Assembly (NCBI GenBank): GCA_965285935.1
Contig: OZ260661.1
Coordinates: forward strand, 40,610,001-40,674,000
DNA: 64,000 nt
Reading direction: 5' to 3'
Source of the DNA: Ophelia neglecta
Lineage: Eukaryota
In this document: positions 10,301 through 46,300 of the stretch, piece after piece
Layout: every line of letters starts with the position of its first letter
How positions within the stretch are numbered: position 1 is the first letter of the stretch
The notes under the pieces: generated by a model
What the model saw: the letters and a program-made list of their open reading frames with translations, nothing else
Told to the model about the DNA's origin: nothing
Database searches by the model: none
Program-made: the position numbers and the translations under genes

Positions 10301-13300
10301 AATCAAATGCCAAGATAGTGGAATATCAATAGATATAAAATCCTCAGAATGACTTCAAAGAGAAAACCCTCTTGACAAAATGGAATGATCCTACCAGTAA
10401 CCCATAGTTCCTGCTAAGGAAACCTTTATCTTGTAGTAGAGCCATATTTTAACCAAAAGACTTATAGAATACACTTCCTCCACTATTTTTATCAAGGTGA
10501 TTGATATAAAAAAGCCTCTGTGAAATTATCAACAGTTGTCTTTTGCAGGGTCATTTTATTGACAAAATTGTTTCAACACTGCAGGAGATGCTTTGAATGC
10601 CGAGGCATCCAACAATTGGGCTTATAATACACCTCCCCTCCCCCTCCCACATTCACCCCTTTACAAAATATTTGATAATAACATTACCATTGCTGACACC
10701 CTCATCTCACCCTCTGACCACCCCATCTAACCCATCTCCCACCACAACCCCACATTCACCCATCAAGACATCTGGTTAAACTGAAGACACACTTTTCTGA
10801 AACTTATGAATAATATTCACATGTTAACCATGGAGGTTCTGACTTGTGTTACAGAATCCGTCATTCGCGCTTTTCAAACTTTTTTCATAGATGCCAACTG
10901 CAAGCAGGCATGTTTGAGCAGCATAACCACAGCTATGCACAAAGATGTCTTTGAAAGCTTTCTATTTACTAAGTATGGTGGAGACATAAGATAAGGCACA
11001 CAAGGGGAGGGGGTCTTGTCTACATGTGTACGTGTAGCTACATGGTAGGTGTACAAGGGTCACCTGAAAAAGGAGGGTGTCTTTACTTCCCTCCATACCA
11101 TATTGCTCACTTCGCCAACATTCACAGTTAGACCTACTGTTGATATTTCAACATTTTTAAAGCCCCAATGCAGACCACAGCATGACAAAAAGTGGTGTCC
11201 TCTCTGCCTGGTAAGCATTTAATTAGCACTAGTACACTCACTACATGAACTCTCATCAGAGGAAGTGCCCCCTGTTGGCTGTTCTCTGGTTTATAGTCTG
11301 TGGTGCTGACCCCTGTGTTTGTAAAGGTCAATCACTTTAGGTTAACGTCATTCTGCTGCTCATGAAATACTACAGCATACAAGAGGCACCACCACTTACT
11401 ATAAATACTAGCACATTACTATTATGAATTTATTCAATTGCCAATCTGAACAGACCAGCATTGCACAGTTAATAAAACTGTGCAATACTTACAACTTTTT
11501 GTGGATTACTAAAAGTTTTTCATAAGAACCTTACCTTCTCCTGCCTGTCTCTTTGCCTGTGACACTGGATTTTCGTATTGGGTTTTTCTATTGACATGGC
11601 TGTAAACAATCAACATGACTTATCAGTTATGGCTGGTACATCTCAAATAGCTTGGTAAATTTCAAACTTAGTGGTCTTGCTTTGAGTACAAAATCATGTT
11701 AAATATTTAGGTGTGTACTTACTCTATGAAATATGTCCCATAGTGAGGATCCTCTACCTTTTCCCATCCATATGGCAGTTCTGCAAGACAAACATTTATG
11801 AGATGGATTGTTTCAATATACATACTTATGCATGTGGTCAATGGTTCAATTAATTATACACATATTGTATATAATTTCTCTTCAAAGCCACCCTAACCTT
11901 TTTATATACAAGTCAGTTAATAATAAAGAAAATGTTACACAAGCTGTGAGCAAGAGATATGATATTAATATCAAATATCCAATCCTAAAAGAATGGTGAA
12001 CATAATTAATATTGCAAGTAGTGTGTAAAGGGTACAGAGAAATATCCCCTCAGGCTGGAACAAACACAAACACAGGCTAAACCTAATTCATTTGTAATAT
12101 AATAGATGACTTGAATTATTAAACCTACAATAGAAGAAATGATCAAATGTGTGTGTAAAATTGGATGTTATTTTTGAACAAGCAGAATTTAGGAACAGGA
12201 AACTGTGTCTTCCCTTATCAAAACAACTTCTACTGAGAAACTTGGACTGAGGCTACCACCTAACCAATGTCACTCTTTCCAAGTCATTGTTTTTCATTGA
12301 CCGAGACTAAGAAGGATATCAACTGGACCAGTAATTTGTGGCCATTCCACCACCATTCAACAGGAGAGTTTGAAGCAGATCAGAGGGTGCCGACATTATA
12401 GTGGTTGTCAGATGTCTGGCGGCTGGCCAATGGGAGGGTACAAGAGGGTTAAACCTGTCTCACTTGACAATGGAAGCATCCCAGGGGACGGGGCAATAGG
12501 ACCTGGATTGATGGCTTAATGTCAATCCTACCTGCAGGTCACACTACCTTCTTAACAGGTATCAAAGGACAATATACTACATCTACCATATCTACAAGCA
12601 TTCTTGACCACAAGCCCTGGGCTTGTAAATAACACAGATACCATCACTGTAATCAGCCCAGTCATATAACGATCAACATTACTGACTACGCATAAAACGC
12701 ATAAAACGCATAAAACATTAAATGAGAATGCTGATGAACCGGGTAACTTTATAACCCTTGTGATATATACATTACATAGTACAATACTCTACATACGGGC
12801 TTCCAGGCCAAGATGTTCCGTGTTAAGATCATGATATTGTCCATAGCCATACTCCATATATCTGTTTGAATACACCTCTGACATTTTGGGTTGGGTACCA
12901 ACTACAGTATTAAAATCTGGATTGCTGGCATACTCATGTGGTATTCCTTCTTCATATCCCTGGCTTTCCTCATACCAATGTACCCTAGAGGGCATTTTGA
13001 ACACAAAACCTTTTGTCGAAGAAATCATGGCAAATTGCAATATCCTAATAAGTACATGCACAAACTTTCTCTATGGATGCTAGCAGCAATTTGTGACTTC
13101 TGACATGAAATACAGCCATCTTGTTGGCATAACTTCATTATCCTAAATCATGAAAGAATATTTCTATAAAGGCCATTGAATCCTCTCCTTGAATATGTAA
13201 GTTCCATAGTGCAAAAATAAATTATATAGATCTCTGTATAAGTCTCTCCTATGTTGTAACCAAATTAACACCTCAACTTCAACCAACAGATATATCAACT

Positions 13301-43300: not shown

Positions 43301-46300
43301 AAATAATAGGACCAGAAAGGGGCCTTAGAACTGTGGCCCCTAAATGTGATACCTTTTGAAGAAAAAAAGTTTATCTGAATGTTCTGATAGATAAATATCA
43401 TGAACCAGCCAGTTATTAAACCCTGATAAGTCTTTGAATCTGGTCACAAATTTCAGAACATTGCTGGCAGCTATTGATCTTTGGGGTTTCTACACTTATC
43501 TGTTCATATCACCACATTGCCTACTTGTGACAGTGGGCTCAATGCCTGCTGAAGACACCAGACAGGGAACCCAACCCTGTCATATTAAACTTGACGCGAT
43601 AGGGATAGTGGGGGATGCCACTAGGTGGGCATGTACCATAGAATAGGGTAACTGTTAATCTCAAAAATACTCAATCCTAATCCACAGCCTAACCAAGTGG
43701 CTGCATCCTAAGTATTCCTAAGCACTAAGGACACATTAACCAACCCTAACACCAAACGAGCTTTGACACAAACCCAAACCCTAATCCAGACCCGCCCTTC
43801 AGACTAAAGACACAAAACCCTAAAAAGCATCTTTCCTCCCTAGGCCTAAGGAACAAGTGATGGCCTAAACACCAAGCATGTCAACATTTCCTAACATATT
43901 TTGTATTAGAGCCAGTGATCCCTCTCGCAGGTGCACATGAAGCGATGATGACGCCAATATCTTGACATCATTTCTTTTGAGTTAAAATGGCTGCGTGTGG
44001 AGGATTACCTCAGAGAATGAGCCAATAAGTAATCATGTTTTTTGTAGGACCACAATGCAATCTGGTATGCTTTTAAATATATTTTTCGAAACAACATTAA
44101 ATTTTGATCTGCGGTCACTCCAGCACCACATTTTGGGGCCACATTTAGTTGCCTTCTTCACTGGCCCTTTTTCAGCACCTTATCCTCCTATAAAATTTTC
44201 ACATTTTATAAGCAAATGTCACACTCTAAAACACAGATGTGAGGCAGCTTAATGGTGAGACTTTGGCTTCACTTCTTGAACAACAATTATATTAGTACAT
44301 GGGGATGTGCTGCTTACAAGGGTGGGTTATGCACTTACATGGGATGGTTATCCAGGGCCAGAATTCACATTCATGGGGTCCATTTTCAGCAAACCCTCAC
44401 ATGGGTAAGTTATCAAGAACCGGAATTTATATGCATGGGGTCTATTTTTGGCAAACCCAACATCGAATGGGAGCTTCCTACAGTAACCCTGGCATACATG
44501 TATTATACACACAAAATTTGAAATGCATGATAGGGAAATATAGTGGAATAGTATTTAACAGATTTTGAACAGGCACATCTTGCTCATTATACCTGGTAGT
44601 CCCACTTGTGGTGCATGACAATCCTCCTGCTCCTCTTCCTCCTCCTCCTCCGTGACACTGTCCAGGCTGTACCAGACATCACAGTAGTCCAGAGGCAGGT
44701 CAGCCTGTACAGCTATGGACACTCTCTCCTGGGTCGGGCTGGCACACTGGGCACACTTTTCCTGAGATCCCAGGAGCTCATTAACAGATGGTGGGTCTCT
44801 CAGAGAAATGTCACTGACAGATGTGTCATAATCTCTGTCAGAGCATGGGGAGTCAGAATCACTAAGGGTCTGCTGATTCTTGGATTGAAATTTATATTTG
44901 AAGGGCTTGAAAGCACTGTTTTTACTAACATTAAAGATCTGGCATAATGCAGAAGGTAACTTTTTGCCAATGTGTACAGGAGAAAATGAGCAGCTGACAG
45001 TATGAAGATCCTCAAAGCTGTTTGCAGGGCTGATTTGATTGACCTTTTTAGTTTTTACTGGCGTAGTGAAAGGAGTGCCAGGTAAGCTGACACATGTACT
45101 TGTACTGGCCTCGTTCTGGACAGGTTTACTAACCAGTTTGTGCTTGTGGTACTTGAAAAACTCCTCCACTGCACGATCATAACTGTCTCTGTGTGTGTTT
45201 AAATCACAACCTACCCCGAGTGAGTCAAGTGAATCATTGTCCACATGCAAGCCCATTGTCTCTTTGCCAGAAGGGACTAGGAACGGTTCAGGTATCTCCT
45301 TCTCAGACCCAAACACACTGCCATGGCCAGGGCTGGAGGCAATACTGACTGACCTCCCAGCTAAGCCACAAGGAGATTGTTGTTCTGGCCAGGAGCAGAG
45401 TGTGGACCTTAACTGGTTTCCTCCTCTAACTTGTGAAACCTCATCTTCATATGAGCTGATAACAATAGCAGGTGAAGAGGGCATCACAGCTTTTGATGGC
45501 ATTGAATCTCCTGGTGACCATTTTAAGCCCTTTATTTTCTCTCTTCGAGACTCATAGTTTAAGAAATGGTCATCACTCCACCAAGCACACCTTGTGCCTG
45601 ATTGATGGTCATGCCCTTGATAGATCCCTGAATTTAACTGCGATGTGAACTGACCAGCTCTGATGGCTCCTTCGGTGGAAATCCGAGAATTCCTGTTGTG
45701 TTGATCAACAGTAGGTATATGACATTCTACAATGTCATCCTTCATAAAAACCTCATAATCTTTCTCCTTGTCCCTCTCCTCAGAGCCCATATCTTTCTAC
45801 TAATTATTCACTGAATCAGGTATACAAAAAATCAGAATCACAAGGTGCAATCTGAACTGCAAGGTTTCCATAGCTAACAGCACAATCTGCCTTTCACTCA
45901 TCTCCCTCGTAGTATAGGTTAATATGACATAATGATAAACGTTCTCATCATTCCTTCTGAAGTGTACAATAGATCAGAATCATCTTGGTATAAAAATAAT
46001 ACATGTGCGCCAGTGCAAACTTGTATTGTTCATTTTCCTGCTTATCTTTTTAGTTAAGCATCACCTGAGTCATGATGGTTCCTTATTACACAGCCATATC
46101 ATATACCAAGAATGACATAAAATGGTGCATAATACTATATATATCCAATTTCATTTGACCAAATCATCTCAAAACACTGTCCAGGTGGTCCATAATAGTA
46201 GGAAGACATGGGTAAGAAAACTACGCTAGAAAAGACAGATCAAGTATCCCTGAAATGTTCAGCTGAAGATAGGGTATCACCTGGCCAGTAATCAGACACA

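Follow-up and report, generated by a model that had tools for sequence, protein, structure and literature searches.

A candidate alternative 5' exon in intron 2 of a MAGI scaffold gene from Ophelia neglecta

MAGI scaffold proteins organise synapses and cell junctions. The alpha, beta and gamma forms of the family member S-SCAM (MAGI-2) start at different methionines, and the short forms are without PDZ0 and part of the GK domain while keeping the WW domains and PDZ1-5 (PMC10690602). In mouse neurons, spine length was rescued by the alpha form only, indicating that the short isoforms are functionally distinct (PMC10690602). In the case of Caenorhabditis elegans magi-1, long and short mRNAs are produced from two alternative promoters (PMC2696103). 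Internal starts are thus documented in the MAGI family. Here, we analyse a 64,000-nucleotide stretch of the Ophelia neglecta genome (GCA_965285935.1, contig OZ260661.1, positions 40,610,001 to 40,674,000; the window), whose exon translations identify a minus-strand MAGI scaffold gene of single-copy type, represented here by its exons 2-9. The original prediction for this locus held that four intronic open reading frames (ORFs a to d) on the gene strand act as first exons under several internal promoters, giving a ladder of truncated MAGI proteins with swapped N-terminal heads. The shorter vertebrate MAGI2/S-SCAM isoforms invoked as precedent are borne out by the literature (PMC10690602), and all four ATG-initiated ORFs are present at the proposed positions, each directly followed by GT. 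However, of the four proposed heads only ORF a is real coding sequence as judged by conservation and length; for heads b, c and d, nothing was supported beyond the existence of the ORF.

An exhaustive HMMER search of 1.84 billion protein representatives gave one true match to ORF a, the protein P0001 (E-value 5e-16), which aligns with it at 33% identity over ~245 residues (BLASTP). P0001 is encoded once, on L001, a 7.9-kb contig of an ENA metagenome assembly from a distant species. The same contig carries the orthologue of MAGI exon 2 (L001 2148-2270), which has 92% amino acid and 82% nucleotide identity to exon 2 of the window. On the same strand, L001 5253-6206 forms a 318-codon open frame homologous to residues 142-385 of ORF a. 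Both ORFs lie in the same MAGI intron (intron 2), ~3.0 kb downstream of exon 2 in L001 and ~2.45 kb downstream of it in the window. Besides exon 2 and ORF a, no shared block between L001 and the window was detected, either at the DNA level or by tblastx. Just upstream of its ORF, L001 also contains a 107-codon frame (L001 4907-5227) whose ATGs are in a different frame; at L001 5252 there is a good polypyrimidine/AG acceptor.

The introns are saturated with change between L001 and the window, yet both ORFs are open. Synonymous sites are saturated as well, the proportion of synonymous differences (pS) being 0.69 in exon 2 and 0.8-0.99 in ORF a, while the proportion of nonsynonymous differences (pN) is 0.32-0.49 in ORF a versus 0.036 in exon 2. 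The frame is therefore kept open at the orthologous place in a diverged species, with amino acid change below synonymous change. Conserved position together with a ratio of nonsynonymous to synonymous substitution rates (dN/dS) below 1 had been proposed as a check on all of the heads. Head a is indeed kept in the same intron and on the same strand in L001, but with dS saturated a dN/dS value is not quotable, and pN is set against pS instead. Two long open frames in the same intronic place and on the same strand, in species so diverged, require selection on translation.

First-order Markov simulations (60 of the window and 200 of L001) were used to judge the length of the open frames. The longest frame in the simulated windows had a median of 143 codons and a maximum of 289. 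At 413 codons from stop to stop, ORF a is longer than all 60 simulated maxima, whereas ORFs c (127 codons), d (93) and b (76) fall below the median. The 318-codon frame of L001 likewise exceeds all 200 of its simulations, for which the maximum was 173. A codon-usage model for which MAGI exons were the only training set gave ORF a a score of +0.14 in its own frame, against -0.19 and -0.49 in the other two; the true MAGI exons score 0.12-0.30 on the MAGI-exon model in a leave-one-out comparison.

A Pfam search of all four heads gave no match. For ORF a, a word search returned nothing and the best hits of an ESM Atlas feature search (0.84) were unrelated disordered proteins. The second HMMER match, P0002 (1025 residues, E-value 5e-06), was rejected as a repeat artefact, as eight repeated stretches of this protein match residues 84-129 of ORF a. 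A two-sequence profile of ORF a and P0001 recovered P0001 alone, and a profile scan of JGI metagenomes yielded no confirmed locus. No transcript-derived protein corresponding to a truncated isoform was found among the matches of the word, HMMER and two-sequence-profile searches. Genome searches show ORF a to be single copy at both the protein and the DNA level, ruling out an origin as a paralog or a transposon. The AlphaFold model has a mean predicted local distance difference test (pLDDT) score of 29, with low confidence throughout, and the protein is predicted to be disordered. Conservation is highest in its sole predicted helix (residues 198-216). Further short blocks of conservation come after this helix, and an acidic run closes the core. 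On sequence grounds, ORF a is a genuine, fast-evolving, lineage-restricted and mostly disordered coding unit. It belongs to no described protein family, with two sequences known so far (this window and L001), and is a conserved coding unit that homology cannot annotate.

The span first proposed for ORF a is correct as an exon form, but the frame does not end there and continues to a stop codon of its own (Table 1). Two in-frame TAG codons precede ORF a, two codons before the ATG, and the ATG context has G at -3 and G at +4. The next ATG further upstream is at ~45871. Donor phases were also correctly described, including the phase-2 case at 27651: genuine MAGI exons begin at the acceptors 34625, 26130 and 11780, and their phases agree with those proposed. 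The direct junctions 2>3 and 5>6 appear to restore the uninterrupted family sequence of human MAGI proteins, and therefore none of the four ORFs would be a constitutive exon.

Table 1. Positions of the intronic ORFs and of the MAGI exons, counted from the first letter of the window
Feature	Position	Strand	Description
ORF a	45790-44593	minus	1198 nucleotides, 399 codons +1; next bases GTATAA
ORF a, full	44555..45790	minus	411 codons, own TAA at 44557-44555; proposed exon form ends at 44593
ORF a, conserved core	44636..45367	minus	residues 142-385; aligns with the L001 ORF at 33% identity
Candidate donor CAG/GTATAA	44587..44595	minus	phase 1, last exon base 44593; joining to exon 3 would give a Gly codon
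ORF b	27766-27651	minus	116 nucleotides, 38 codons +2; next bases GTATGT
ORF c	18516-18189	minus	328 nucleotides, 109 codons +1; next bases GTAAGT
ORF d	12995-12797	minus	199 nucleotides, 66 codons +1; next bases GTATGT
MAGI exon 2	48355-48242	minus	N-terminal/first segment of GuK-like domain; phases 1, 1
MAGI exon 3	34625-34506	minus	GuK core from TTR motif; phases 1, 1; candidate acceptor for ORF a
MAGI exon 4	29225-28916	minus	GuK end, linker, first half of WW1; phases 1, 2
MAGI exon 5	26130-26048	minus	second half of WW1; phases 2, 1
MAGI exon 6	11780-11723	minus	first half of WW2; phases 1, 2
MAGI exon 7	11599-11535	minus	second half of WW2; phases 2, 1
MAGI exon 8	5073-4876	minus	PDZ1, first part
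MAGI exon 9	2862 to ~2231 (3' end approximate)	minus	rest of PDZ1, linker, PDZ2

We tentatively favour, with a probability of roughly 0.4, the reading that ORF a is an alternative 5' coding exon of the MAGI gene that would be spliced to exon 3. For this one head, the conservation of position, strand and protein sequence in L001 is compatible with the original prediction. The transcript would start shortly upstream of 45790, translation would begin at the ORF a ATG, after the two in-frame stops, and a phase-1 donor at 44593 would connect the exon to exon 3 at 34625. The predicted product is without PDZ0 and the first GuK segment, in a manner similar to S-SCAM beta, and would comprise a ~400-residue head followed by the partial GuK, WW1, WW2 and PDZ1-5 core. 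The ATG directly after the upstream stops is consistent with splicing of ORF a into MAGI as a 5' exon. The same can be said of the phase of the donor-like GTs: within the non-conserved ORF tails, the best of them are phase 1 both in the window (44593) and in L001 (6195 and 6201). It can also be said of the lack of any AATAAA or ATTAAA for 2429 nucleotides after the window stop, a gap of a size that occurs at 5.7% of positions.

Several observations weigh against an alternative 5' exon. The ORF a donor, CAG/GTATAA, is weak when scored with a rough position weight matrix (~4.0, against 8.6 and 10.3 for two constitutive donors), and the L001 donor candidates, judged by eye, are also weak. No CpG island or other promoter signal was seen upstream of ORF a. 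In both species a stop codon closes the ORF a short way past the conserved core, as expected of a separate gene. Furthermore, the N-terminal 141 residues of ORF a have no detectable counterpart in L001, where all three frames upstream of the ORF gave scores at the level of shuffled sequence, and the first 115 codons of the L001 ORF, though open and partly homologous, do not include an in-frame ATG. As an ATG is lacking ahead of the core in this one relative, the ATG-initiated first exon is not conserved as such. A CpG-island promoter internal to the intron was also considered and rejected, since the sequence from ORF a to exon 3 is CpG-rich in one place only (~40980-42035), and this stretch corresponds to a young multicopy element bounded by terminal inverted repeats.

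Almost as good an account of the data is given by an independent single-coding-exon orphan gene, nested in sense orientation in MAGI intron 2, with its own promoter, stop (44555) and 3' end, and never joining MAGI; on balance, we consider this somewhat unlikely. Such a gene would explain why the window has a complete ATG-to-stop ORF, why the stop falls shortly past the conserved core in both species and why the candidate donors into MAGI are weak. A conserved intron position is expected of any nested gene, and L001 contains an ATTAAA 379 nucleotides past its stop. In the window, however, the first 2.4 kb past the stop are free of canonical poly(A) hexamers, and the missing in-frame ATG ahead of the L001 core is as awkward for a self-contained gene as it is for a first exon. 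The residues past the candidate donor are not conserved, and same-strand nesting is the rarer arrangement.

The missing L001 ATG fits better with an internal exon. A large MAGI cassette exon, in phase 1 at both ends, would add 315-400 disordered residues between exons 2 and 3, within the GuK-like domain. In L001, splicing of exon 2 to an acceptor (CCAG/) at 5256/5257 would keep the entire ORF in frame, which removes the need for an ATG in that species. An AG is found in the same geometry in the window, 4 nucleotides after the upstream TAG (aaag/AT), which gives an exon start at 45792 and an exon of 1200 nucleotides, a multiple of 3; in exon 1 as in exon 2, the 3' end is in phase 1. Despite this, a cassette exon is improbable. 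The window acceptor is very poor (8/20 pyrimidines, AAG, three AGs just upstream), while a good acceptor 20 nucleotides upstream (45811/45810) reads into the two TAG stops. Insertion would presumably also interrupt the GuK core at its contiguous 'VPC-TTR' segment, which straddles exons 2 and 3, and the position of the window ATG directly after the stops would be a coincidence.

The original prediction pointed to a GT donor of fitting phase in each of the four ORFs. We counted every ATG-initiated ORF in the three introns that is followed by a GT in a given phase, using the two wrong phases and the antisense strand as controls. In none of the introns was the needed phase enriched over either control, and the phase match thus fails as a signal. 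Among intron 5 ORFs of at least 66 codons with a donor, 6 have the needed phase, compared with 3-5 for the wrong phases and 2-3 on the antisense strand; the 2.8-kb intron 4 alone holds four ORFs of at least 38 codons with a donor in the needed phase. Sites with a donor score of at least 9 number ~22 per strand in the window, which puts into perspective the strong ORF c donor (GTG/GTAAGT, 9.6); the ORF d donor scores 3.6. On a codon-usage log-odds model trained on the MAGI exons plus ORF a, and compared with 101 control intronic ORFs, b and d are in the top 14%, which is unremarkable, and c is in the top 2%. Genome searches found one copy each of ORFs c and d, ruling out a transposon origin. 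No homologs of b, c or d were found, including in a word search with ORF c.

ORF c sits on a purine-rich stretch, with several upstream ATGs within 50 nucleotides, and such composition favours long K/D/E/S-rich frames. The longest gene-strand stretch of the window free of AATAAA or ATTAAA (22544-18149 on the minus strand, 4.4 kb) ends 40 nucleotides past the ORF c donor; as this strand is rich in purines here, the gap may be compositional. For ORF d, the ATG first proposed is correctly placed, but an earlier in-frame ATG occurs ~11 codons upstream. With head b, the protein would start halfway through WW1, leaving a second half that, we infer, could not fold alone, and the predicted product of a head on a broken WW1 is accordingly implausible. 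ORFs b and d are most likely chance open frames. ORF c is probably one as well, its length being within chance and no homolog having been found.

A reduced scheme of two-step module swapping, in which ORF a would be an old, lineage-specific disordered module placed on the PDZ0-less MAGI core by an internal promoter, and ORF c a second head joining at WW2, is quite doubtful. The full ladder, with all four ORFs as first exons under separate internal promoters, is more doubtful still and is not supported by the present analysis. It can call on an ATG, an open frame and an in-phase GT in 4/4 cases, on the donor and codon score of ORF c and on the single-copy status of c and d, which are hence not transposon fragments. 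Against it stand the equal frequency of in-phase GTs in the wrong phases and on the antisense strand, the abundance of donor-like sites, the lengths of b, c and d, each shorter than the median longest chance ORF, the purine-rich setting, upstream ATGs and lack of a homolog of ORF c, the start of head b inside WW1 and the weak donor of ORF d. More generally, chance should supply long introns with ATG-initiated open frames that have an in-phase GT, and here length and conservation alone set one real element apart from three look-alikes.

That ORF a is untranslated, as a chance or decaying intronic frame, is equally hard to accept: it would suit the lack of a Pfam family, the single homolog and the low-confidence structure model, but not two frames of 413 and 318 codons beyond every simulation in species with saturated synonymous sites, nor the block-wise conservation at the protein level and the frame-specific, MAGI-like codon usage. 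The remaining probability is shared among other readings.

The host gene was recovered from translations of the sequence around the three acceptors together with a list of every open frame on the minus strand, and its exons were searched one by one. Along the minus strand, the exon translations present the MAGI domain order of PDZ0, GuK-like, WW1, WW2 and then PDZ1 onward. Exon 1, with the initiator Met and PDZ0, lies outside the window on the minus strand (40676681-40676223, window-equivalent 66681-66223), 2.2-2.7 kb past the window end. Its donor is in phase 1, the same as that of exon 2, and skipping of exon 2 would therefore keep the frame. Guanylate_kin (exon 3, E-value 1.8e-07) and PDZ are above the Pfam cutoff, while Pfam WW and MAGI_u1 are weak matches only, because the WW domain is split by an intron. 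The best PDB matches are PDZ domains of MAGI-2, MAGI-3 and MAGI-1, with near-equal scores (E-values 1e-24 to 1e-22). By this measure the gene appears roughly equidistant from MAGI-1, -2 and -3, which fits non-orthology to any one vertebrate paralog. WW1 and WW2 are each cut by a phase-2 intron at an identical position (28916/28915 and 11723/11722), after a 'YFI' motif and within the Asp codon preceding His. This shared position is consistent with an intron that predates the WW duplication.

The window has a GC content of 38%, and an observed/expected ratio of 0.25 for CpG compared with 1.01 for GpC. This strong CpG depletion suggests heavy germline methylation of the gene body or the genome. 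The CpG-rich element at 40980-42035 is ~1.05 kb long, with terminal inverted repeats of ~28 bp (40980-41007 and 42008-42035) and an internal 221-bp tandem duplication (41242-41682). At least 40 copies occur in the genome at 97-99% identity, with a CpG observed/expected ratio of 1.2-1.8 versus 0.25 for the window, and the element looks like a very young non-autonomous DNA transposon. A second CpG-rich stretch, in intron 1 (54850-55750, observed/expected ~0.9-1.0), may be another young repeat. Two intronic tandem arrays were also identified, one at 33404-33827 with nested periods of 42, 57, 93 and 150 bp, and one at 47145-47452 (77 bp x 4), between exon 2 and ORF a.

As with sense-strand intron-nested genes, ORF a is complete, has its own start and stop, and keeps its position between species. 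Unlike such genes, it has no canonical poly(A) signal within 2.4 kb in the window and no ATG ahead of the core in L001, and it has phase-compatible donors into a host exon in both species. Should ORF a nevertheless be a separate gene, it would represent an orphan protein family known from two sequences and easily missed by automated annotation. C. elegans magi-1 offers the parallel of an invertebrate single-copy MAGI gene whose internal promoter gives a shorter isoform, although word and HMMER searches found no sequence relation between magi-1 and ORF a. The S-SCAM/MAGI-2 short forms have the same architecture as that predicted if ORF a joins exon 3. Nonetheless, as the gene studied here is equidistant from MAGI-1, -2 and -3, its predicted product would not be an orthologous isoform. 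The short S-SCAM forms as described in PMC10690602, moreover, are truncations, for which no long unique head is mentioned, whereas ORF a would add ~400 unique, disordered residues. If the alternative 5' exon is real, a conserved ~400-residue head replacing PDZ0 and the first GuK segment would constitute a new regulatory module on a well-studied scaffold.

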